Of a DNA stretch of 64,000 nucleotides, positions 1 through 42,578 are shown in pieces. Position 1 is the stretch's first letter; the number at the start of each line of letters is the position of its first letter. The notes below the pieces were generated by a model. That model was not told the DNA's origin, ran no database searches, and was given only the letters and a program-made list of their open reading frames with translations. The DNA lies in the IMG/VR virus record IMGVR_UViG_3300020477_001008, positions 62,001 to 126,000 of that record. The stretch is one strand, 5' to 3'. A program made the translations under genes and the position numbers.

Positions 1-3000
1 GATGTGTCAATACCATTATTTCTAGTAGCAAGTCTTACATCTTTATATGTATAAAGAGGATGTTTATTTGAACCATTAAAGAAAGTACTTGAATATGCTG
101 ATACAGTTGTTGCCGCAACAACATCATTTTCTGGTAAATCAAATACATTGTAAATTGCTTTTTTATAATTTACAGAAATTTTTGCAGTACCAGTTGTTGA
201 TCCTGTAGTTGCAAATCTAATTCTTAATGTAGCATTTGCTCTATCTGTAATTGGCGTACCAAAAGATGTTGCAACTGCATTAGTAGATAAACTTTGATTT
301 GAAAGTAAACTGTTTGGTGTTGCTGTTGTACCAATATCAAATTGTGGATTCGATCCATCAAATGCAGTATTGATTACAATTTGTACATTAGCAATTGAAT
401 CTGGTTTAATTAATTGATCTGTAAAGTCTACATATTTGTTGTCACTATCTGTGATAGTATCTTTAACAACAATACCAATTGTTGGATTATCTGAAAATTC
501 TTTTCTATAACCATAACTACCATTTTCAACATAAGCTTTATTAATTACACCCGATGATGCACTAACAACACCAGTTGCTGGTGATGTTCCTGAAATAGTC
601 ATAGTAGGTGAAACATAATTTGAACCACCTTTGTTAATTGTTAAATTTAATATTGCACCAAATGTTGAATCCCCGTATGCTGATCCAGACCTTGCTGTAA
701 CAGTATGTGATCCAGTTGTACTTGCACCTCCAGTACCACCTGTTATTTGATTTGTTGTATCAAATGTATTTGTGTGATCGTAAATGTGTAAAATTGTACT
801 TGTACCATCTGTATATACATTAATTACTTTACCAGTTGCACCTGTATTTGCCTGTGTTATAGTTTCCCCATATTGGAATGGCGTACTTGCATTTGATAAT
901 GTTGTATTAATTTGGTACGTTGGATTATTTCCTTTAAACCTAATAACAGCACTAGAACCAGCTGAATCTGATCCACCTGTTTTAATTGATACGTTACCTG
1001 GTTCACCGTAATATGCACCACCAGGATTTGTTAATGTTATTGATGTAATACCACCACTACCGTTGATTGTTGCAACTGTACCTGATGCAGATGTACCACC
1101 GTTTCCGTCAGCTTCAATTGTATCTCCAACTGAATAACCTGAACCAGCAGTTGTTACTACCATTGCTGATACCCCATCAGCAACATTGGCTACAGAAACA
1201 TTTGCATTAGCTCCACCAAAGTCTGTAAAGTTAATTGTTTTTTCAATTACTTGATCTGTTAGTGATAACTGAAATGTTTTTGTTCCATATGTAGTTGTTG
1301 TAATTGTACTTGCGTCTGCATTTTTATGATCTGGTAATACAGCTTCAAATGTAGCATTAGCAGTTGTTACTAATTTTCCAGCAGTCTCATTCATTGATAC
1401 TGTTAATGGATTAGTTGTAATAACACTTTCAATTCCGTGATTTGTATCTGTTAATCTGTATACGTTCCAGTCACCATTGTCATCTTTTGCTACCCAGGTA
1501 GTTGACCCTATAGCAACATCAGTGTTACTTGCTACGGTATTACCGTATTGTGTTTTTAAATTTGCTTTCTCTAATGCTTGGAAATTTGTATCATTAATAT
1601 GTACGTATCCAGCTGTTGGTAAATCAAATGATTCTGCTCTAGTTGGCCAAATAACATCTGATACTTTAGAGCCTGTTGGCTTTTTAGTCCAGTTTAAACT
1701 GTCATCAGCATCAATAGTAATAATATCATCAGTAATAATATCTGTAGTAACTACATTATCAATTCTTGGTAAAAATTTAACTACTTGAGGATTTGTTTTA
1801 ATTTTAGTTGGATCAAGTCTAAATTCCATAGATTGATTAATTTCTGTACCACCAAATTCACCAACTTTAAATGCATAATACTCATAAAGATTAATTTCTT
1901 GTCTTTCATTAATAATATCAGTTCTTAAAATTTTATCAACTGAGTTTCTAGAACCTTTTTGTCTTACAAATCCTTGATAGAATCTTGTTTGACTTTCATC
2001 AACAATTTCTAAGTTTTCTAAACTTTCTCTATTTTGGAATCCAATTGTATGTAACCCTGCTTTGTTTAACTGTTCATTATTAGTTGTTTTGTCAATATCT
2101 AAATATGTTGTTACATCACTTGCCGCAGTTTCAAAGTTTGATATAATACCTTTCTCAGTATTAATTAAGTATCCATTGGCTTCTAGTTTACCATTCCAAT
2201 CATTTGTTCTTAATAATGTTTGCTTTAATCTTGGCTGTCTAATAGATAGTGCTGGATCATAAATTACATCTTTAAATGTTGTTACGTTATCAAAAATTGT
2301 AATATGTTCAATCTCTCTTGCATATACATTTACAAAATATATTGGTCTTTTTTCATCGGATGTTATTTTAACTGTTGAACCATCACGTATAATTGTTGTT
2401 GTTGATGGATCAATTGGTTTACCGTCTTTATCTAATATAGAATATGAACTACCAATAACATCTTCAACACTTGCCACAACACCGTTTAGTGGTTTAAACT
2501 TAACTTTGTTTGCCGCCGGCGAAACTGCTAAAATACTTTCAGCAGGCCAATTTCCTAAACTCCAGAATAAAAATTCTTTAGCAGAATATAACCAATTATA
2601 TGTTTCTTGTATATCAGTATTAATTGAATCAAATATCCAACCTTGTGACTCTAAGTATCTACCATAGTTAACTATAAAGTCAAATACTTCTTGTTTAGTT
2701 GTAAATTCTTTTCCATATTCAACATCAACAGTTTCATTTTCTTTACTTGCTCTATAGTAAGTTACACTTGCACCACCTTCCATTGGTGGTTTAGCTACTG
2801 ATAAAAATTTAGTAGGATCAAATGAATTACCTGTAGTGTGTGCTTCTTTAACTTTGTAATATGTTCCTTCATATAAAATATAATCTCCTAAAACAAGAGA
2901 TTGGTTTGGTTGATAATAAGGAATGTCAAGATATTTTCCACCAACTTGTACAGGTACACTTGGTCCTGTTTCTAAACTTACATTAGTTCTAAAATAATTT

Positions 3001-6000
3001 TTTCCAATATCATATCCGTGTACAGACCAACCTCTAGCAGTTTTTTCAATTATAATAGCTGAGTAAGTTGCATTTTGTACTGACGGAGAAATATGTAATA
3101 AGTGATTAATATTTGTATCAGGTATGTATATGCTTGTTCTTTTTGAAGTTGGAGAATATGCTTCAGCCTGGCATTTATAAGAACCAAAGTCAATAAACGC
3201 ACCTTGTTTGTGTGCTAACTGTGGAGTAATATTTCTTATTACACCACCATACAAAATATCTGGTTTTTTATTTTGATTAATTAATCTTTCACTAATATAT
3301 TGTTGATAACCTGTACCAACAGCTATTGAAGTATTAGCTGTTTCTCTGTGAACATATACATTATTTGTATGACGCTTACCTGTATTTTTATCAAATTTTT
3401 GTAATTTGTTTATATTACTATTATCAATGTTTAATGTATCAAACATTAATTCAGTAAATTGTGTTGGCTTCATTACAAATAAAGCAGACATTAATGCAAA
3501 TGGCATAGTACTACTCATATAGAATGCTTTTTCCGCCGGTGCAATATCTCCTATTGACCAATGAAAATGTGCTTCTACTCTATTTGGCTCTCTGCTACAT
3601 AAACCAATATCTTTTGGACTTTGTAAATCACCCTGGAAGTCTACTGGTAGATATGTACTAAAACCATCTCTTCTGTATATGTTTGCTCTTTTTGTGTAAG
3701 ATAAATCTTTAAAGTTTTCTCTTCTACCATAACGTATAATTCCATTTTCAACGTCTGAAATTAATTTATTTCTTTTATCTGTTTCAGTCCAAGAATATGT
3801 ATCGTCCCACCAAGTTGGTTTAATACTAAAACCTAACATTTCCCAAGGTGTTAAATGTGGTCTATCAGTACCGTAGAATTTTTTATAAATTCCTCTCCAG
3901 TGACCAGGTGTAGCTGTATCTTTAATATTTGTAATTGATTTCCAGTTCCAAGTTCTCCAATCTGTTTCACTAACAAGTACCGGATGATTTTTCTGCCAAT
4001 TAACATCATTGAAAGTCATCCAACGATAAATGTGTGCTCTAAAGATTTGATTAAATTCTAAATATGAATAATCTTTTGTATTAAAATAATTACTAACTAA
4101 TGATTCATATGATAAAGGCGCCGTGTAATCTGGATCAATAAATTTATTTTCAATATCATTAAATATTCTTTTCTCAAGTTCTAATAATGCTCTATCTCTA
4201 TCATCATAAAATTTTAAATTTAATGAACCATCGTGTCCTTGAATAAATGTTTGTTCACCTTTATTAAAAGAATCTTTATCAACTATTTCACTAGGTATAA
4301 ACGTTTGGTATATACCAAGTTTTGATGGAGTAGGCGGAATAAACACAGGTTGCTTTTTATCAAAAAAGTCAACTCTAACTTTGTCACCTACTTCTGGTTT
4401 ATTATCTCCAATAAACACAATTCTATTATCTGTTGCATTAGTAATTACATAATCTTGATTCATTACTAAAAGCTTATCGTTATTATAAACATATAAAGAT
4501 TTTGAATCTTTATCATTTACAGGACTATATGCGTATGATGTTACTAATCCACCAGCTGACGAATCAGTTAAAACATTTTGATAATCTTGTATAGCCCAGT
4601 TTTTAGTATCTGATGACCAAGTTTTATTTGCTGTTGTTATTGTTGTAGTATTAGTTTGTTTTGCATCACCATATGAAAGCATTAAACTATAAGCCCAATT
4701 TTCATTTGGTTTTTTATTTTGATTAATTTCTGCTAAAGCTGTATCAACAAGTTTAGTATCTGTCCAAGATGTTACATCATTTCTTCTTGCTACATCTAAA
4801 ATTTTATTTAAAAATTTATACTTGAACCTTACGTAATCAGTTTCAGCTAATCTTAATGATTTAATAATATCTCTATCATCACTATTAACGTGTGATGCTA
4901 ATTTTAAGAAAGGTGCATCGTGTTGCAATATATTTTCACTTAATGTTAAATCTTGTTCTGTGTCTCTGTAGTTGTTATTTCCTAACGCCAATCCAGTTAG
5001 ACCTTTTTGATTTGCAACACCGCCTGAGAAGTGATTTAATAAATCTCCATAATCATATGTTACTACATCAGAGTTTAATGCATTATTAGTTAAATTTTTT
5101 GGTACTTCATAATAAGCTTTATATAAATCTCTTGTATCAAAGCTTTTAAATTTAACTAAAATATGATCAGTATCAATTGCTGGTGTTGTTAATTTAATAA
5201 ACTGATTTTTTTGAATTTCATAATCTGTACCTTGTAATTTTTCTTTATTATTAATAAAAACACGTACAGTATCGTCACCTGCAATAATAGATTCAAGTAA
5301 AAATAGTTCGTTGCTTACTTCATCGGCAACATCAAATTCTTGAACTAAACATTGTTTTGATTTTGTACTAACAGCCGCCCATTCGTTATTGTGTGTAGTA
5401 ACTGTACCATCAGTTAAATTGGTTACATTATTATTAACAATTCTTATACTACCACCCATACCACTATGATTTTTACAATAGTAATATAATTGATCTGGAG
5501 TACCTGCTGTAGGTGTAAACTCAATTTTCCTTTTTGTTACAGTTGCGTTATCAAATGTTGCACTATGATATACTGCTTCTGTTACTTCAATATCATTATG
5601 AAAATACTTAATGCCAGTATTATAAGAAACGCCACTTGCGTGTGATCCATTTTCAGTAATACTCATTAAGAACGGATGATAAGCATCTGAATATCCTCTA
5701 GAAGTAACTGAACTGTCATCTATATCAAAGATATATTTGTTACCTCTAATTAATATTAAATTTTGTTGTTCAATATTATCAATATAAAATTTGTTGCCTG
5801 TAGTTCCACTTGCTTTTTGTACAATTATTTTGTATTCAAATGTATCTTGCAATATATTTTTATAATCATATTTTTTATAATATTTGAAACCAGCTGGGCC
5901 ATTAGTTTCACTGTTTAAATAATTCTTAAATTGTATTGTACTTAAACTTGTATAATCTGTGTATGTTAATGGAAAGCCTAAATGTGTGTCGTTAGTTCCA

Positions 6001-7874
6001 GTACCAACTGTATAACCAAAAATTTCATTTCCTGTAAATGTTGATGAACTGTAAACACTAGTATTTCCTAAATCAATACCATTTGTATCATATAAATTAA
6101 ATTTAGGTGATTTGTTTATTCCTGTTTTTTGTTGTCCTAATTTCCATTCGTAACCAGTCCAGTAATATTCTTTACCTCCATTACTACCACCAAGTCTTAT
6201 AGTAACTTTATCATTGTCTTTTATTTTAAGTTCTGTTCCAGCATAATAAGTTGAGTCATCTAATGCTCTTAATTTAATTACACCACCTACAAATTTTACT
6301 TCATAAATTGATGACGACGCATCAAATGTACTAGACTTAACGTCCCAACCAGTGTCAGGAGTACCGTCACCGTCCTTATCGTAGTCCCAAGGATCAGTAT
6401 TTGCATCCCAGGTAACTAAATCTGTTTGCGAATTTGGATTTACAAATAAAACTTTATAACCTTCTACTAATAATATATCATCAACTCTATATGATGCTTG
6501 ATCTTCTATATCACTAATAGTTGCTGTTGATTCAAGAACATCAACAGTAGTAACGTGTTCAGAACCATAATTGTATAATTCAATATCTTTATTAAATTCA
6601 ATAATTGGTCTTTGACCTTTTCTAGCTTGTTCTAATTGAAATGATGTTTCTCTTAAGAGTGTAGTTGAATCAAAATATCCACCATCCCAGCCTCTAATAG
6701 CATCTGTTATAGAATCAAATGGATGAAACTCAGGAACTTCTTCTTGATAAGTTCTGTAATTTGTAATATTGTCTTTATGCACCCAGCCGTTTGTTCTTGA
6801 CCAAGGATTTTTATCTTTGCAACCTCTATTGATTGTAATATAATCTGCTGTAGCTACATCAGGTATAGTATCGTAACGTTCACTATCAAAACCTTTAGTA
6901 GTATCTGTTTGTGCTATTGTATCTGCTCTGTCCCAAGGTATAAATGTTTCTTTCAAAAACAATTCAGTTTCAACATCTGATGTTTCAACTAATGATATAC
7001 CTTCTTTTGAACCAACACTTTCTACAAAAACTTTTTTATCTTTATAAGTTGTACCAACTAGTGAAGAATCACTAAATTGTATTAACATACCAGAGCTGAG
7101 TGTTACACCATTGGGAGAAGTATAAGATTTTGAACCAATAATATTGTTAGGATCAACTCTATGATTGACAGTTATTTTATCTCCAGTAACAACGTTAATT
7201 GAACTGGTGGCAAATGATAAATTTAAACCTGTGGACTCATAATCGGCTGTTGCGACCCCATTAACTTCTACTATGTCATTGGGAGCGATTGAGTATGTTA
7301 ACACGAACGTTTTTGAGTTTGCAACTGACTCAAACGATTCAACCAAACCTCCTATAACAATAGCAGGTACGTTTAAATCTAAACTTGGATACCAATAGTA
7401 ATTTTCATAATTTATAAACTTATCATAATCTATTGGTGCGGAAAATGTATAATGCTTTTGTTCAAATAATCTATTTTGATCAATTGTTTTACCATTTTCA
7501 CTATCTATATAATTTAATATTTCACTATAAAAAACAGAATCTCTTAAATTTTTACTATCTGGATCTTTAATGATTCCAGCTGTTTCTAATTGATACGTTT
7601 TTCTATTTTTAATTGTTTCTGTTTTATAATTGTCTTTAGCTGGTCTATAAAATACATCAGATTTCCTACCAATGTATTCTGTAACTCTAGTATCATTTGC
7701 TTTACTAAAAGCTTGTTCAACTGTACCATCAAAGAAGTTTTTTAACTTTTCGTTTTGTAAAATTTCAGGTAAGAAACTTATAGCCTTAGCTTTATCGTCA
7801 GTTGTTGAAACTGAATTGCTAACACTTGAATTTGCATTAGATGAATTGAATTTTATTTCATCATCATAAGCCAT
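1..7874 (-). CDS. Giant baseplate wedge/structural protein (T4 gp7-like position), >2600 aa, runs off the left edge of the window
   Basis: ATG at 7874 just after the gp6-like stop reads MAYDDEIKFNSS...ISFLPEILQNEKLKNFFDGTVEQAFSK. The same frame reads ...HPLYTYKDVRLATRNNGIDT at positions 62-3. The ORF track lists no terminated minus-strand ORF here, consistent with one open frame to the edge. Gly/Thr-rich beta repeats near 600-1200. Confidence 0.8.
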   Translation of the reverse strand, partial: MAYDDEIKFNSSNANSSVSNSVSTTDDKAKAISFLPEILQNEKLKNFFDGTVEQAFSKANDTRVTEYIGRKSDVFYRPAKDNYKTETIKNRKTYQLETAGIIKDPDSKNLRDSVFYSEILNYIDSENGKTIDQNRLFEQKHYTFSAPIDYDKFINYENYYWYPSLDLNVPAIVIGGLVESFESVANSKTFVLTYSIAPNDIVEVNGVATADYESTGLNLSFATSSINVVTGDKITVNHRVDPNNIIGSKSYTSPNGVTLSSGMLIQFSDSSLVGTTYKDKKVFVESVGSKEGISLVETSDVETELFLKETFIPWDRADTIAQTDTTKGFDSERYDTIPDVATADYITINRGCKDKNPWSRTNGWVHKDNITNYRTYQEEVPEFHPFDSITDAIRGWDGGYFDSTTLLRETSFQLEQARKGQRPIIEFNKDIELYNYGSEHVTTVDVLESTATISDIEDQASYRVDDILLVEGYKVLFVNPNSQTDLVTWDANTDPWDYDKDGDGTPDTGWDVKSSTFDASSSIYEVKFVGGVIKLRALDDSTYYAGTELKIKDNDKVTIRLGGSNGGKEYYWTGYEWKLGQQKTGINKSPKFNLYDTNGIDLGNTSVYSSSTFTGNEIFGYTVGTGTNDTHLGFPLTYTDYTSLSTIQFKNYLNSETNGPAGFKYYKKYDYKNILQDTFEYKIIVQKASGTTGNKFYIDNIEQQNLILIRGNKYIFDIDDSSVTSRGYSDAYHPFLMSITENGSHASGVSYNTGIKYFHNDIEVTEAVYHSATFDNATVTKRKIEFTPTAGTPDQLYYYCKNHSGMGGSIRIVNNNVTNLTDGTVTTHNNEWAAVSTKSKQCLVQEFDVADEVSNELFLLESIIAGDDTVRVFINNKEKLQGTDYEIQKNQFIKLTTPAIDTDHILVKFKSFDTRDLYKAYYEVPKNLTNNALNSDVVTYDYGDLLNHFSGGVANQKGLTGLALGNNNYRDTEQDLTLSENILQHDAPFLKLASHVNSDDRDIIKSLRLAETDYVRFKYKFLNKILDVARRNDVTSWTDTKLVDTALAEINQNKKPNENWAYSLMLSYGDAKQTNTTTITTANKTWSSDTKNWAIQDYQNVLTDSSAGGLVTSYAYSPVNDKDSKSLYVYNNDKLLVMNQDYVITNATDNRIVFIGDNKPEVGDKVRVDFFDKKQPVFIPPTPSKLGIYQTFIPSEIVDKDSFNKGEQTFIQGHDGSLNLKFYDDRDRALLELEKRIFNDIENKFIDPDYTAPLSYESLVSNYFNTKDYSYLEFNQIFRAHIYRWMTFNDVNWQKNHPVLVSETDWRTWNWKSITNIKDTATPGHWRGIYKKFYGTDRPHLTPWEMLGFSIKPTWWDDTYSWTETDKRNKLISDVENGIIRYGRRENFKDLSYTKRANIYRRDGFSTYLPVDFQGDLQSPKDIGLCSREPNRVEAHFHWSIGDIAPAEKAFYMSSTMPFALMSALFVMKPTQFTELMFDTLNIDNSNINKLQKFDKNTGKRHTNNVYVHRETANTSIAVGTGYQQYISERLINQNKKPDILYGGVIRNITPQLAHKQGAFIDFGSYKCQAEAYSPTSKRTSIYIPDTNINHLLHISPSVQNATYSAIIIEKTARGWSVHGYDIGKNYFRTNVSLETGPSVPVQVGGKYLDIPYYQPNQSLVLGDYILYEGTYYKVKEAHTTGNSFDPTKFLSVAKPPMEGGASVTYYRASKENETVDVEYGKEFTTKQEVFDFIVNYGRYLESQGWIFDSINTDIQETYNWLYSAKEFLFWSLGNWPAESILAVSPAANKVKFKPLNGVVASVEDVIGSSYSILDKDGKPIDPSTTTIIRDGSTVKITSDEKRPIYFVNVYAREIEHITIFDNVTTFKDVIYDPALSIRQPRLKQTLLRTNDWNGKLEANGYLINTEKGIISNFETAASDVTTYLDIDKTTNNEQLNKAGLHTIGFQNRESLENLEIVDESQTRFYQGFVRQKGSRNSVDKILRTDIINERQEINLYEYYAFKVGEFGGTEINQSMEFRLDPTKIKTNPQVVKFLPRIDNVVTTDIITDDIITIDADDSLNWTKKPTGSKVSDVIWPTRAESFDLPTAGYVHINDTNFQALEKANLKTQYGNTVASNTDVAIGSTTWVAKDDNGDWNVYRLTDTNHGIESVITTNPLTVSMNETAGKLVTTANATFEAVLPDHKNADASTITTTTYGTKTFQLSLTDQVIEKTINFTDFGGANANVSVANVADGVSAMVVTTAGSGYSVGDTIEADGNGGTSASGTVATINGSGGITSITLTNPGGAYYGEPGNVSIKTGGSDSAGSSAVIRFKGNNPTYQINTTLSNASTPFQYGETITQANTGATGKVINVYTDGTSTILHIYDHTNTFDTTNQITGGTGGASTTGSHTVTARSGSAYGDSTFGAILNLTINKGGSNYVSPTMTISGTSPATGVVSASSGVINKAYVENGSYGYRKEFSDNPTIGIVVKDTITDSDNKYVDFTDQLIKPDSIANVQIVINTAFDGSNPQFDIGTTATPNSLLSNQSLSTNAVATSFGTPITDRANATLRIRFATTGSTTGTAKISVNYKKAIYNVFDLPENDVVAATTVSAYSSTFFNGSNKHPLYTYKDVRLATRNNGIDT

Positions 7875-7877
7875 TTA

Positions 7878-10800
7878 TTAATTTCCCCCAGTTGATCTTA
7901 AATTTGCACCTGTTAATCCTGAAACAATCTCAACATCATCTACTGATGCAGTTGAAAAGAACAATTCATTACTTGCGGCTTTAATTTGGAATAAGTCTCC
8001 AAATTTAGCTTCAGCATCTTTTGGTACAATAACAACTGAAGAAATTTGTGTTGATAATTGTCTGTGGATGTATGCGGCTAATTCACTGTAATAAAAAGTA
8101 TCTCCAAAATCCCAATTTGTAATTCTAAAGTAAGAACTAATTGCTTTTACCACTTCAGTTTTTACTTGGTTATCCGTATAACTTGAACCTGGCATTTTAA
8201 CTACTCTAAATATAGCTTGATTTACTTCATCGGCTGTAGTACCAAATAATAATTTAAATGAAGCAGATGTATAAACTAATTGATCACTAATTGATTTATA
8301 TTTTTCTAATTCTGTTAAATTATTTTTAATTTCTTGAGATGTTGGTGCTAGTGGAAAATTAGATAACGTTCCACCTGCAGAATGCCAATTTATTACATTT
8401 GTATAGTATTCTGTTTGTAATACTATTAATTCCATAATATTTGATACACTAGGATCAATTCTTTGATCTCTTGGTGCAGAATGTCTATATTGGAAATAGA
8501 ATTTGTTTGTAGTGTTAAATGCTCTACCAATAAATGATTTGTAAATTGTAGTTCCGCTTACTCCATATCTTGTTGTATATGAACTAGCAGTACCATTTGT
8601 TAATTTAGTACCATTCAAGTAAAAGAAGTTATCACTAGTTAAGTATTCTAATCCACTATTTGTTAATGATGAAACAGCTGAAACACCTGTTGTTGTTTTG
8701 TAATATGTGTAACCATCATAATCATCATAACTTATAAAGAATATATTATTTGTATTATTAATAACATTTTCGTGAGCAATAGGATTATCAGGCATACCAT
8801 CATTGTCTGTATCCATATTTGTAAGTTTTATTTTTTTAGTATCAACAAAACCATCTGCTTCAACGTAACTATCACTAACACTAAAAGTTATTTTTTCTGT
8901 TAGTTTAGTTGTACTTGATGGGTTGCTTAATACAGCAACGTCTTTGTTAATATCTAAAAGTTCAATAGTATCTTTAACAGCTTTTCCAGTTGCACTATCA
9001 ATATTTTTATATTCAGGAACATAATAGAATCTAACTTCTTGGTCACTTTCAAATACATAATCTAATCCTCTAATTTTAAATTCATATTTTGGATTACTTG
9101 CCGAGTCAGCCGCCGGTATATAATTTGCGTGAATCAACCAAGATGTGTCAGCCGCCAATGTAGTTGCACCACCGTGTGATTGATTTTTTGTTATACCAAA
9201 ATCGTTAGTAAGGTCAATATAGTCTTCACTAATTAGATACCATTTTTCTGCTTTTGTACTTGCATCTCTATAATGATAACCAATACCAAAATCAACACCT
9301 TTTTCCATTTCTGTTTGTATTAAAGATGTTTCTGAAGTGTTTAATTTTGTTCTTAAGTTTGGAAGAATTTTTCTTACTTTTAAACCTGCTGTAATTGATT
9401 GATCTAAAACAATTGATCCAGTTGTTTCATTAGATAATACTGTACCATCATTGCTTATGCTTACCACAGTAGCCCAAGTAGTTGTAGTTGGTGTAGTATA
9501 ATCATCAACAAATTCTAGTTTAGTACCTGGTCTAATAAAACCAAGTTTCTCATCTGAGCCATTTGGATTATTATAAACTGTAATTAATTGTGCTTCATTT
9601 GGTCTACCTGTATTTGTAATTGGAGTATTACCAATATAAAAGAAACCTGTACTTGATTTTCCTGCTACAGCAAACGGTTGCCATAAAATTTTCTGCGCCG
9701 CTAAATTCATTATAAACTGATTTGCATCGTGTCCAGATTCAATAGCTGTTTTATACGTGTCAAAATAAAAATTCTGTAATTGTATTTTTTTTATTAATGG
9801 TGCTAGTACATTATCAATAATATATGTATAACTTGTTGTATCAACAATAGTACCTGTAATTTCCTCTGTACTTAAAGTAAAGTTTGGATTTTTGTATAGT
9901 ACACCATCTTCACCAAATACGTTTACACTTTTAACTGTACCAGTAGGATCATTTATATCAATATATCTTGAATGACCTATATGAGTTTTATTCAATGCTT
10001 TCATTTTTTGAATCGTAGTTGATTGTGTTAATGGAAAAATATTATAGTCTTCTGCATTAACCATTCTATCTTGTGTGTAAAAAGATTTTGGTGCATTGTT
10101 TTTAATATCTGTATCGGTTTCAGCCGCTTGTGAATTTGATACTGTACTTGATAAAGTTAAAGATATAGTTGCAGTATATTCTTGTCCAATAGAGTTTTTA
10201 TATTTGACTGCTATTTCTTTATTTTTAATTCTATCTTTTTTAAGTACTTGACCTTGTCCATTACTTGTTCTGTAATAAATTCTAAAACTTCCTTTTGGTG
10301 CATTACCAAAATTACCATCACTAAACAATACTGATACTTGGTCACTGTTTCTAGATTGTACAGCATATATGTTTCTTGTGTTTAATGCTAAACTATTATA
10401 AATTGTATTTTGACCAAATAACCCTGGCACAGATTGCCATTTCTCTGTAGGTACACCATTTGTATTAATTTTTTGCACCCAAACATCTGTATCATTTACA
10501 TCTGCTACATCTATATCAACTACTCTGTTTGGTAATGGATTTGAAAATGTATAATCTTGGAAACCTAATTCACCTTCTTTAAAATACATAAAGAATCCTG
10601 TGTCAACACTATTAAATCCTTGATTATCATTTCTGTATATAAAGTTAAAAGCTTCAGTCATATCTGGTGCTGTTTCATACAAGTATCCACTTTTATGAAT
10701 ATCTGCTTTTACAACATCAATTGATGTATTAACACCGTCAATTGTTTCTGAAAAGTTTTTAACAGCTGACTGTGTGCTTGTAGAATTTAAACTATAAATT

Positions 10801-24696: not shown

Positions 24697-24773
24697 AGGC
24701 GATTAGCTCAGTTGGTTAGAGCATTCCGTTGATAACGGAAAGGTCGTAAGTTCGAGTCTTACATCGCCTACCA
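24697..24773 (+). tRNA. tRNA-Ile (anticodon GAT), CCA encoded
   Basis: Acceptor AGGCGAT/ATCGCCT, D-arm GCTC..GAGC, anticodon arm TTCCG-TTGATAA-CGGAA, T-arm GTAAG-TTCGAGT-CTTAC, 3' ACCA. Confidence 0.95.
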
Positions 24774-39976: not shown

Positions 39977-40705
39977 ATGGGATATTACGACGATAAACAT
40001 AGCAGTCAAGAAGAAGTTGAAAAAGAACTACTTAAACATTGGCAACCAGAATGGCTTAAAGAAAAAAACATTTATGATTGGCTAAATGATGAAACAACAA
40101 TTCCTTATTTAGAATTAGATGTTTATGACAATATGCCTTGGCCTGAAATTTTTAAAGAAGCCCAAGCTGTTAAAGATCAATGCGTAATACATAGAGAATA
40201 TTCAGGAGGAGGAACTTGGTTAAGTGGTTGCTTACACGGGTTAGGTACAGAATATACTAATACTTGGGATAGTTATGAAGAGTTTAAGCATTTAACAGAA
40301 GAGCAAGTTGAGTATAAATGGACAACGTTATCTGAACAATGTCCGGTTACAACAAACTATTTTAAAAATATATTTCCTTTTAGAGAATATAAACGATTAA
40401 GGTTTATGTGGGTAGAACCGGGCGGTTATATTTTGCCACATAGAGATAATGACCATAGAACATTTTCTCCGGTTAATGTTTCAATTTATAATCCTCAAGG
40501 TTGTGAATTTAGATACAAAAATTGGGGTACTGTTCCATTTACAAATGGTAGTGCTTTTTTAATTGATGTAGGACAAGAACACGCAGTATGGAACAAATCA
40601 AATGAGGCAAGACTACATATCATTTGCCACGGTAGAAGAAAAAATCCAGAATGGAAGCAGTTGTTATTAAAAAGTTGGCAGAAATATGGCTATGGTAAAT
40701 ATTAG
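39977..40705 (+). CDS. Aspartyl/asparaginyl beta-hydroxylase-like oxygenase
   Basis: RLRFMWVEPGGYILPHRD (HxD)...EHAVWN.SNEARLHII. Confidence 0.78.
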   Translation: MGYYDDKHSSQEEVEKELLKHWQPEWLKEKNIYDWLNDETTIPYLELDVYDNMPWPEIFKEAQAVKDQCVIHREYSGGGTWLSGCLHGLGTEYTNTWDSYEEFKHLTEEQVEYKWTTLSEQCPVTTNYFKNIFPFREYKRLRFMWVEPGGYILPHRDNDHRTFSPVNVSIYNPQGCEFRYKNWGTVPFTNGSAFLIDVGQEHAVWNKSNEARLHIICHGRRKNPEWKQLLLKSWQKYGYGKY

Positions 40706-40725
40706 CACTTTAAAGGAGCAACAAA

Positions 40726-40920
40726 ATGATTAAAGAAGCATTAATTAAAAAACTAGAGGGTGATGTAGCGTCAGCAAGAGCAGACTTATTGGTGTTTTTA
40801 GAAAAACCTATGGGTGTTGCAGAGCATATTGATTATGTTGCTACAGCCGAAAAGAAACTTGAAGCATTAGCCACAGCTCAAGATAAATTAAATTCATTAA
40901 GAGATTTAGACAAAGAGTAG
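40726..40920 (+). CDS. Small hypothetical protein
   Basis: AAAGGAG SD; GVAEH.D motif in a helical hairpin. Confidence 0.7.
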   Translation: MIKEALIKKLEGDVASARADLLVFLEKPMGVAEHIDYVATAEKKLEALATAQDKLNSLRDLDKE

Positions 40921-41039
40921 AAACAGTATCTACGTAGGAATAGAACTAAAGTTCTATTGTACAACGTTCGTTAGTTTCTTTACGATTTTTTATTCTATCA
41001 ATATTGATAACTGTGATATTTGTATGTGTTTTTTTATAC

Positions 41040-41370
41040 TACTATTAGCTGATTTGGCCATACTTCACCCAGTTACGGGTGAAGATATCTCACTATTAGA
41101 GATCAGTCATCCAACTTGCGGACTCTAAAGAGGTGGTTGGCCGATACCCCTATCAATCCTACTTCATCCAACGGGACCTATACATATCCAAAGTTGGCTG
41201 TTTATGTATAAGTTAATGGTTGCATTTCTTTCTCTAGCAGAGCCATTATCATTTGTGCCTTAGTTAACACTTGCCTTGCATCGTGCGATTCGCCTGTGTT
41301 GTTACACCGTAATTCGCTTTTTCCAAAGATGCTATGTTTGCCTATGTTTGCCTGAATTATTCTGCCTATG
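41040..41370 (-). ncRNA. Candidate structured non-coding RNA
   Basis: ORF-free, locally GC-richer, several stems (41063-41084, 41087-41103, 41127-41152, 41176-41213, 41215-41247) that pair better on the minus strand via G-U; upstream TTGACC-N18-TAATTT. Confidence 0.55.
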
Positions 41371-41467
41371 CTTTAAATTACGACAAATATAGCATAATGG
41401 TCAACCTTTATTTTCCAACTTTATTAAATCTCTTGCTTTTGTGCGAAAAATTTAGTAATATTAAAGT

Positions 41468-41716
41468 ATGAAAACAAAAGATCCAAGAAAAGATCACTAC
41501 GTTAAAGCACTTCTAAGGAGTATTGATCGAAGTAAAAAAAGAAAATCAAAACATAAAACAATTACTATAAACAATTATGAACGATATTGGGATAGTTCAA
41601 CACCAACAGGTCACGTTATTGATATTGTTTCTCAAAATGGAGATATGTTAACAATTAAAATGAATTGGCCAAAAGGTTATAGCCCAAGATTGAGTCCCTA
41701 TACAAGGAAACAGTAA
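41468..41716 (+). CDS. Hypothetical protein
   Basis: TTGCTT-N17-TAATAT promoter ends 6 nt upstream of the ATG. Confidence 0.65.
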   Translation: MKTKDPRKDHYVKALLRSIDRSKKRKSKHKTITINNYERYWDSSTPTGHVIDIVSQNGDMLTIKMNWPKGYSPRLSPYTRKQ

Positions 41717-42033
41717 TGAGTAAAACATTAGATCCTTTAGATAACGAATGGGATTATAGAGATTGTAGATTAGAAAATAACGGCATCATACCAAAGACGT
41801 GTGGATATAATAAAACATTTAAGTATCAAATAAAATTACCAGCACACGGAGTTCAAGGAGAGTATCTAGATTGGTGTACAGACCATTGTAAAGGAAAGTT
41901 TGGTTGGCATTTTGAAGCAACTGATCAACAGTTTGATGATTATGAACCAGGCACACATTGGGGACAAGACAGAGCTGTTTTAAGTTTTTCTAATAAAAAA
42001 GAAGCTTTTCTTTTTAGTCTTTACATAAAATAG
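41716..42033 (+). CDS. Hypothetical phage protein
   Basis: Coupled start (TAATG); WC..HCKGKFGW...F....AFLF pattern. Confidence 0.65.
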   Translation: MSKTLDPLDNEWDYRDCRLENNGIIPKTCGYNKTFKYQIKLPAHGVQGEYLDWCTDHCKGKFGWHFEATDQQFDDYEPGTHWGQDRAVLSFSNKKEAFLFSLYIK

Positions 42034-42068: not shown

Positions 42069-42578
42069 ATGAGTGGTACTAAATCAAAAAACAAAGGTAA
42101 ATCATACGAACGTGATATTGCGAATTTTTTAAGTGAACTTTATCAAGAGTCATTTACAAGAGTTCCACATTCAGGTGCGTTTATTGGCGGACAAAATTTT
42201 TCTAGGATTGATACTTTATCTGAAAATCAAACTAGAGGATTTAAAGGCGATATTATTCCACCTGATACTTTTCAGTTATTAGTTATTGAAGCAAAAAATT
42301 ATGGAGAGTTTAGATGGAATCAATTAGCCCTCGGCCAAGAAGTAAAACAATTAGACGAATGGATTAAACAAGCACAAGACAGTTGTGAGCCTCAAGATAA
42401 ATGGTTACTATGTGTTAAGATATCAAGACAAGGTGAATTTGTTTTATGGGATCCAAAGCTTTGGAAAGATTTACAATATAGATTACCATACAGAGATTAT
42501 CATTATGTAGATTATAAAACTTTTTGGGAAGTTAACAAAAACGAAATACAAAAGCAAAGTAAAAAAGAAATTGTATAA
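42069..42578 (+). CDS. Holliday junction resolvase-like PD-(D/E)xK nuclease
   Basis: SKNKGKSYER.IA..L, RVPHSGA, GDI, IEAK. Confidence 0.75.
   Translation: MSGTKSKNKGKSYERDIANFLSELYQESFTRVPHSGAFIGGQNFSRIDTLSENQTRGFKGDIIPPDTFQLLVIEAKNYGEFRWNQLALGQEVKQLDEWIKQAQDSCEPQDKWLLCVKISRQGEFVLWDPKLWKDLQYRLPYRDYHYVDYKTFWEVNKNEIQKQSKKEIV

Follow-up and report, generated by a model that had tools for sequence, protein, structure and literature searches.

Evidence for a structured non-coding RNA gene with exchangeable modules and a twin lineage-specific repeat in uncultured T4-like phages

The DNA analysed here (the window, 64,000 nucleotides) comprises bases 62001-126000 of the 242,646-bp IMG/VR virus contig IMGVR_UViG_3300020477_001008, which has 32% G+C and codes for a T4-type portal, major capsid protein and baseplate hub. 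Window positions 40939-41414 are very probably a self-contained minus-strand gene, whose product is a structured non-coding RNA of about 430 nucleotides (nt). The gene lies in a gap at 40921-41467 (contig C1:102921-103467) without any open reading frame (ORF) of at least 50 amino acids (aa) on either strand. No other ORF-free gap of at least 300 bp was found inside the window by this threshold, as the original prediction, made from the sequence of the window, had stated in calling it the only long one. TAA, TAG and TGA were each present in all six frames of the gap, which indicated that neither recoding nor a hidden gene explains it. A coding gene was rejected on these stops and because no conserved ORF was found among the relatives.

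Fold, strand and expression of the RNA

The homologues of the RNA were collected by exact-pattern scans with three short conserved strings, which gave 31 and 33 IMG/VR stretches and 74 in metagenome contigs. The 21-nt core pattern matched 109 loci, from which 64 distinct core sequences were kept. Once the matches that G+C-rich coding DNA gave by chance had been removed, about 50 distinct homologues remained, which formed about 21 clusters at 90% identity. They came from marine, freshwater and other samples (IMG/VR and metagenomes) and represented dozens of uncultured T4-like phages, partly jumbo phages.

The fold was evaluated on alignment A4, which contained 33 close relatives. RNAalifold gave 55 pairs on A4, 12 of them with compensatory changes. 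A purpose-written script counted 50 pairs in eight helices including a pseudoknot; across the 33 relatives, 99.6% of the paired cells were canonical, and 17 of the 50 pairs carried compensatory double changes, with both sides changed. By comparison, 500 column shuffles gave 93.7 ± 0.3% canonical cells (maximum 94.7%), and slid partners gave 33-43% with 0-2 double changes. Covariation among homologues, which had been named with the original prediction as a way to check it, was present at these counts. The paired cells comprised 1420 Watson-Crick pairs, 218 G-U pairs, no A-C pair and 6 others. The 218 G-U against 0 A-C cells indicated that selection acts on the minus strand as a single strand, the one originally chosen because two stems needed G-U pairs. 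Moreover, the minus strand had a better fold than its shuffles (z = -3.3), unlike the plus strand (z = -1.6).

The pseudoknot covaried in at least four lineages, and distant lineages rebuilt it from unrelated sequences, namely GUCAAUAC/GUAUUGAC, CAGAUAAUAC/GUAUUAUCUG and UACAUUGGUG/CGUUAAUGUA. Mutual information over all column pairs mainly reflected module shuffling and phylogeny and served just to confirm the pseudoknot. A second helix of GGAUGAAG with the 5' strand of P8 (helices as in Table 1), or an internal duplication, was rejected because it was not retained in loci L124 or L131.

Most stems of the original prediction recurred in the conserved fold. The stem CTTCACCC/GGGTGAAG (41063-41084) is P8, which is conserved with A-U to G-U changes, and AGGGGT/ACCTCT (41129-41151) is P7, conserved as well. 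The 10-11-bp stem at 41177-41212 is P5, with compensatory changes in five pairs, AATGG/CCATT (41215-41247) is P4, with three covarying pairs, and the hairpin at 40939-40958 was kept through compensatory changes. The stem ATCTC/GAGAT (41087-41103) is confined to the window's lineage; other lineages have a different hairpin there. P1, P6, the pseudoknot (41191-41197 with 41111-41117) and a direct repeat, R, were new to the present analysis.

The expression of the RNA was investigated with four marine RNA libraries from four studies, aligned to window 40500-41900. Three of the four held contigs wholly within the RNA (41147-41358, 41091-41260 and 41046-41196, with 4, 0 and 1 differences, respectively), and in those three runs the flanking genes were matched by diverged relatives only. 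In addition, a search with the core alone found 16-47% of its sampled 31-mers in each of at least 18 metatranscriptome runs, whose samples were marine, seawater, freshwater or salt-marsh. Transcription, another check attached to the original prediction, is well supported by these unstranded contigs, though not proven.

The anatomy of the gene is given in Table 1. The promoter TTGACC-N18-TAATTT of the original prediction was found again, with conserved counterparts of both boxes in the relatives. The decamer AAAGGTTGAC in the -35 region occurs once in the 242-kb contig. Transcription is predicted to start at about 41369 (41368-41370), and one metatranscriptome contig extends to 41358, near this position. 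The terminal hairpin is probably the 3' end of the RNA, near 40939; its versions in the family are AUAGAAC, AUAGAGC, AUGGAG, GAUGUGC, AUGAGC and GAACGAAC. A terminator role for it is only presumed, since no U-run follows the hairpin. From the predicted start to the conserved 3' hairpin the RNA measures about 431 nt, in line with the 330-430 nt first proposed.

Table 1. Features of the RNA gene. Coordinates are window positions, and the RNA is read from the minus strand.
Feature	Position	Strand	Observation in relatives
A-rich upstream tract and -35 box (TTGACC, 41399-41404)	41399-41414	-	GGTTGAC invariant, with an A-run before it, in 33 close relatives
-10 box TAATTT, 18 nt past the -35 box	41375-41380	-	TAnnnT 17-18 nt downstream
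5' tail with three AGGCA motifs	41334-41369	-	3-5 AGGCA at the same place in all marine relatives
P1 (41328-41333 with 41278-41282) around exchangeable P2 domain (41285-41317)	41278-41333	-	P1 100% paired, 2 compensatory pairs
P3 (GUGUU with AGGCAC), then conserved AAAUGA (41249-41254)	41255-41270	-	RNAalifold prediction
P4 (AAUGG with CCAUU; 41243-41247 with 41215-41219)	41215-41247	-	Compensatory changes in 3 of 5 pairs
P5 hairpin (41203-41212 with 41177-41186)	41177-41212	-	Compensatory changes in 5 of 9 pairs
Joining strand CCGUUGGAUGAAG	41162-41174	-	Identical in all close relatives; CCGUUGG retained in most distant ones
P6 (41155-41159 with 41120-41124) around P7	41120-41159	-	U-A/A-U/U-G exchange
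P7 hairpin (41146-41151 with 41129-41134), near-invariant loop AUCGGCCAACC	41129-41151	-	A-U/G-C exchange
Pseudoknot 3' strand AAGUUGG, partner 41191-41197	41111-41117	-	7 pairs, 100% canonical, 5 compensatory in close family
Conserved GACUGAUCUC, then lineage-specific hairpin with repeat copy R_A (CUAAUAGU, 41092-41099)	41087-41110	-	Comparison of lineages
P8 hairpin (CUUCACCC with GGGUGAAG)	41063-41084	-	100% paired; tetraloop GNRA in many relatives
Conserved UAUGGCCAAAUC, then repeat copy R_B (CUAAUAGU, 41041-41048)	41036-41062	-	Comparison of lineages
A-rich linker, little conserved	40973-41035	-	Sequence and length vary; A-rich in all lineages
3' module: small hairpin (40963-40972) and terminal hairpin (40939-40958)	40939-40972	-	Compensatory changes in close and distant lineages

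The domain inside P1 occurred in at least three unrelated versions, which were shuffled among lineages. The loop of P4 is a conserved stretch of 23 nt (GCUCUG...CAAC), whose motif was retained in distant lineages, and the P5 loop CCAACUU (41191-41197) supplies the pseudoknot with its 5' strand. No other 21 nt of the family are as well conserved as the P7 hairpin. The joining strand CCGUUGGAUGAAG was demanded by the first search pattern; it holds too in loci from an independent pattern. For P8, an A-U pair in 17 sequences was exchanged for G-U in 16, which is workable on the minus strand alone.

The direct repeat R, of 7-10 nt, follows GACUGAUCUC and again UAUGGCCAAAUC(U). The 13 lineages compared had 13 different R sequences, with both copies in agreement in every lineage, and the versions include UGGUAAUA, AUGAAGAG, ACGAAGAG, AUAGCAG, GUCGAAAG, GGAUGAAGU, GUAGAAAGAU, GGAUAAU, AACAGAG and GCGAAUAG. 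Where the R copies differ, the change was often G/A or U/C, and in several lineages it was of this kind alone, so that pairing with one pyrimidine-rich partner would persist. In one subfamily, an inserted strand was able to pair with either R copy. Pairing of R with the P4 loop was rejected, as it was inconsistent across lineages. It is possible, on a tentative view, that R is a pairing or guide-like element. In the locus L162:712-1064, two tandem copies of the unit AUCUCUAAUAGU(G/A)AG precede P8, which brings the number of R copies to three. It is unusual for direct repeats to co-vary from lineage to lineage, and this signature offers a concrete experimental handle.

Distribution and relation to known RNAs

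The Rfam 15 scan of the whole window gave a single gathering-level match, the tRNA-Ile at 24697. For the gap, the best matches at a threshold of E = 10 had E values of at least 1.7, and no Rfam 15 family was found there, with transfer-messenger RNA (tmRNA), RNase P RNA, group I/II introns, 6S, signal recognition particle (SRP) RNA, GOLLD, ROOL and HEARO among the families covered. ARAGORN found neither a tRNA nor a tmRNA in the gap, and the phage's true tmRNA lies elsewhere in the genome. The earlier statement that the element is not a tRNA, tmRNA, RNase P or intron agreed with these scans. A Csr/Rsm-type protein sponge was rejected, since the repeats of the 5' tail are AGGCA, not GGA. GGAAC repeats upstream in the L119 group were rejected as a Csr-like sponge because they lie within the coding 3' end of the neighbouring gene.

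A search of GenBank phages by blastn with the window gap, the core and two distant homologues found nothing real, and no cultured phage had the canonical core. Among species-representative bacterial and archaeal genomes, the 21-nt core pattern had 21 matches, none of which matched the covariance model R1, so that all of them were regarded as chance hits in G+C-rich DNA. This model contained 13 pairs only, since P5 dropped out when RNAalifold was run on the mixed alignment. Across the IMG/VR and metagenome loci, the RNA was widespread in uncultured T4-like phages from both oceans and lakes. The 64-aa gene that lies left of the RNA was common in marine T4-like contigs; the window's RNA sequence adjoined it in 1 of 80 loci, and in that single locus the non-coding stretch was more conserved than the 64-aa gene.

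One catalogued motif, Polynucleobacter-1 (RF01718; gathering score 37 bits), matched two freshwater relatives, L122 with 77.7 bits and L124 with 38.5 bits. In both loci the 141-nt match lies directly 5' of the core common with the window RNA, and the 21-nt P7 hairpin, the P8 hairpin, the R repeat and the 3' module follow directly past it. Model R1 aligned L122:1517-1617 (18 bits, E = 0.06). The window RNA differs in its 5' domain, which is a different, unrelated module, and the Rfam model is without the core of P4-P8 and pseudoknot. No RF01718 match was found in window 40600-41700 even at E = 10, nor in the whole window. The window RNA is thus outside the RF01718 family because it fails the model, yet its core is homologous to RNAs containing the motif.

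Weinberg et al. (2010) described Polynucleobacter-1 as an orphan motif, drawn from samples of environmental water and from a single Polynucleobacter genome (PMC2864571). The motif was often downstream of a phage-like gene, with no case in a sequenced phage and no function assigned (PMC2864571). The phage-like gene upstream fits the arrangement found here with a same-strand gene upstream of the RNA. The core strings were absent from the alignments of Weinberg et al. within the 200 supplementary files searched (PMC2864571), and no later mention of Polynucleobacter-1 was found in the literature searched. No Rfam family, GenBank phage annotation or paper was found that describes the core. One exchangeable 5' module of distant relatives was already catalogued in 2010. 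The suggestion that the RNA was possibly undescribed therefore held for the window, which has no Rfam match, but not for the 5' part of its freshwater relatives, which is Polynucleobacter-1. This motif, an orphan for 16 years, can now be placed as one of several interchangeable 5' modules attached to a larger core that is conserved. The contig of L122 also had a match to the Rfam freshwater-2 RNA (RF02980; 12867-12948, 52.2 bits).

Bacteria and phages have few known large ornate RNAs of unknown function (OLE, GOLLD, ROOL, raiA and a small number of others), every one of which has led to new biology. The window RNA ranks among the orphan ornate phage RNAs, and there is a modest chance that it is of a categorically new kind. 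Like GOLLD and ROOL, it is large (several hundred nt), multi-helix and pseudoknotted, occurs mainly in phages or prophages, and has its own transcription signals and strong covariation. In contrast to these two, which have been studied by cryo-electron microscopy (PMC12286853), it is smaller (core of about 250-340 nt), does not adjoin tRNA genes in the window and has twin R elements, and no sequence or model similarity to them was found. A conserved scaffold with short lineage-hypervariable segments is also typical of guide-bearing RNAs, such as the IS110 bridge RNA, the IscB/TnpB omega RNA and crRNA-tracrRNA. The guides of bridge RNAs were reportedly discovered through variable segments with matching copies. 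However, scans of the neighbouring genes with Pfam, NCBIfam and PHROG revealed no IS110, IscB, TnpB or Cas gene nearby; both R copies lie within the RNA and none in flanking DNA; and no target for R was found in the RNA or the phage contig.

Some loci departed from the canonical form. In L172, a window-type 3' half was joined to another 5' hairpin. A variant in L082:6400-6800 (minus strand) had a different P7 loop (AUGCGGGUUUCC) and no CCGUUGG; it kept the P4 loop, P8, a pseudoknot of wholly different sequence (GCAUUGCUG/CAGCAAUGC) and its own R (GCGAAUAG). This variant indicated that the family is broader than the exact patterns used for collection. The ORF-free gaps of L022:2332-2678 (minus strand), L017, L084, L089 and L092 in related marine phages had the promoter, AGGCA tail and P1/P2 module of the window RNA, but a different body, and may represent a sister RNA class or a very diverged form. 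In the lake metagenome contig L131 (1-640), the RNA came after the end of a D-amino-acid-dehydrogenase-like ORF and a tRNA-like gene recognised by eye; if this tRNA gene is real, the context would be cellular or prophage rather than T4-like.

The Pseudomonas phage PA5oct (MK797984.1, about 75.7-77.2 kb; L224:2488-4000) has a 1.5-kb stretch with four tiny annotated ORFs beside a PDDEXK nuclease homologue. It contains a perfect TTGACA-N17-TATAAT directed away from the nuclease gene and a string, GCUCUGGUAGAAAAAGAUCAAC, that resembles the conserved P4 loop. Model R1 scored only 7 bits here, so that homology was not shown and the candidate was rejected, as was the published ncRNA003 of PA5oct, which is located in another context. 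The covariance model can be used to annotate the gene where phage genomes show an unexplained gap or tiny spurious ORFs.

Role of the RNA and rival explanations

The RNA was usually found near a PDDEXK_15 nuclease gene (window 42069-42578; a RusA-like resolvase in PHROGs) and the baseplate-hub gene. By the Pfam, NCBIfam and PHROG scans, the neighbours were the PDDEXK_15 nuclease, a 423-aa viral protein, small unknowns, a 2OG-type hydroxylase and the baseplate hub; no domain or named relative was found for the 423-aa protein in these scans. In six lineages, that of the window included, the RNA and the nuclease gene are divergent. They share a strand in L085, L091, L096, L098 and L101, where the RNA lies upstream of the gene, and in the L119/L124 group, where it lies downstream. 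About one third of the lineages have no PDDEXK_15 nuclease gene within 1.8 kb of the RNA, and an obligatory link between the two was rejected, since the association is frequent, not universal. The variable arrangement argues for an autonomous gene, and against a leader or untranslated region.

This autonomy, together with the invariant loops, the modular 5' end and the recovery as RNA, makes it fairly probable that the RNA acts in trans as a scaffold, in a ribonucleoprotein or an RNA-only architecture, and is made early from a strong host-type promoter. Host RNA polymerase would transcribe it early in infection from the sigma-70-type promoter. The invariant 3' core, from P4 to P8 with the pseudoknot, would serve as the scaffold, which may bind a protein partner or form an active RNA architecture, like other orphan ornate phage RNAs. 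On it would be displayed two identical lineage-specific, purine-rich elements of 7-10 nt, R_A and R_B, which may recognise one common partner by base pairing, most simply a pyrimidine-rich nucleic acid. The 5' domain would be an exchangeable accessory module, with Polynucleobacter-1 as one version.

Several points weigh against the scaffold reading. The evidence is computational throughout, and both the 5' and the 3' ends are predictions. The metatranscriptome contigs are assembled and unstranded, and DNA carry-over is possible. With the flanks counted, the differences between R copies were only modestly enriched in transitions (114 vs 85). The complement of R was not found inside the RNA, and in the 242-kb contig it occurred at chance (19 sites, 19 expected). 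P3 was neither supported nor refuted because it is invariant in the close family. A contact of GUUGG with the P7 loop CCAAC was rejected, since both strands are invariant and, in two lineages, the change to GCUGG is not compensated. Finally, the frequent neighbourhood with the nuclease gene may be mere synteny.

A more specific possibility is that the RNA is a programmable recognition device, with R_A and R_B as rapidly evolving, guide-like elements leading the scaffold or its partner protein to nucleic acid of the host or of a rival phage, or else a new ribozyme that cuts before each R. This appears unlikely; if true, the recognition device would represent a guide RNA system of a new class, one that lacks any known effector family.

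Somewhat less likely is a primer RNA at an origin of replication, which the original prediction had offered as an alternative. Here a structured transcript would form a lasting RNA-DNA hybrid in the A/T-rich linker and prime the leading strand, as for ColE1 RNA II and T4 oriF/oriG. With these systems the locus shares a dedicated promoter and a neighbourhood of replication or recombination genes, and with ColE1 RNA II also a several-hundred-nt structured transcript followed by what would be a hybrid-forming region. The strong promoter with an A/T-rich stretch (40973-41035) at a distance downstream, and the short AGGCA repeats directly past the promoter, which are iteron-like, fit such an origin. 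The locus lies between the baseplate-hub gene and a recombination-type nuclease, and T4 oriF, in uvsY beside genes 25/26/51, is placed similarly. Furthermore, the minimum of the contig's cumulative GC skew (96-98 kb) is 5-7 kb from the RNA (102.9-103.5 kb). However, this minimum lies elsewhere than the RNA and tracks the switch in gene orientation. T4-type R-loop origins require no conserved fold, whereas here selection acts on eight helices, a pseudoknot and invariant loops; it is the fold that is conserved and not the A/T-rich stretch, and of all parts the linker shows the least conservation. In addition, the RNA terminates in a conserved hairpin, the orientation relative to the neighbouring genes varies, and the core was repeatedly recovered as RNA. 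The origin alternative was not supported by these results.

Self-processing was judged improbable. In this case the core would be a ribozyme or a nuclease substrate, cut before each R (after AUCUC and after AAUCU), and the cuts would release a hairpin RNA of 50-75 nt and a 3' fragment, both starting with R. The pyrimidine-rich left flanks of the two R copies are similar in all lineages (ACUC or AUCUC; AUCU), catalytic cores typically combine invariant joining strands with a pseudoknot, and L162 has a third copy of the R unit. Nevertheless, no likeness to any Rfam ribozyme family was found, and the metatranscriptome contigs 41046-41196 and 41091-41260 span the R_A site.

A cis-acting leader or riboswitch for the neighbouring PDDEXK nuclease operon is highly improbable. 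The five lineages with the RNA upstream on the same strand, where a Shine-Dalgarno-like GGAGGUGAU follows, would suit it, and Weinberg et al. listed Polynucleobacter-1 as possibly cis-regulatory (PMC2864571). Against this, the three arrangements relative to the nearest conserved gene leave no constant upstream position: the RNA is directed away from the nuclease gene in the divergent lineages, lies downstream of it in the L119/L124 group, and in about one third of lineages has no such gene nearby; moreover, the next downstream gene in the window is on the opposite strand.

The reading that the locus is not an RNA at all is extremely improbable. It would then be a gene for a small protein, a gene in decay or a double-stranded DNA element (for packaging, recombination or protein binding). 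Direct repeats and hairpins can mark DNA sites too, and a 16-codon ORF (AUGAUAAUGGCU...) is open in the window and L086. Against this, every wobble pair is G-U on one strand and none is A-C. In P4, compensatory changes replace amino acids of the 16-codon ORF, which is closed after 5 codons in L119; all kinds of stops occur in all frames, and the core, though non-coding, shows more conservation than the protein gene next to it.

Other features of the contig

The nearest cultured phages by the capsid protein were jumbo myoviruses (about 65-70% identity), among them Pseudomonas phage PA5oct, which was the closest, as well as Vibrio phage 2.275.O and Salicola phage SCTP-2. The contig carries 9 tRNA genes and, at C1:172221-172515 (L227:222-516), a permuted two-piece tmRNA (alpha_tmRNA, 152.8 bits; ARAGORN tag ADENLALAA). 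A tmRNA of alphaproteobacterial type in a phage hints that the host is perhaps an alphaproteobacterium, and an abundant marine one. The tRNA-Ile (GAU) at window 24697-24773, found by both Rfam and ARAGORN, is the window's sole catalogued RNA.

A second ORF-free gap lies outside the window, at contig C1:23944-24958 (locus L226), with 1,015 bp and no ORF of at least 50 aa. It had no Rfam match at E = 0.01 and none to model R1, and it may contain another RNA or a regulatory region. At the start of the window, positions 1-7878 had no listed ORF of at least 80 aa except one of 103 aa (1477-1788, plus strand). The composition there is as in minus-strand coding, and the region is probably part of a huge minus-strand gene that crosses the window start, a kind of ORF that was not listed.

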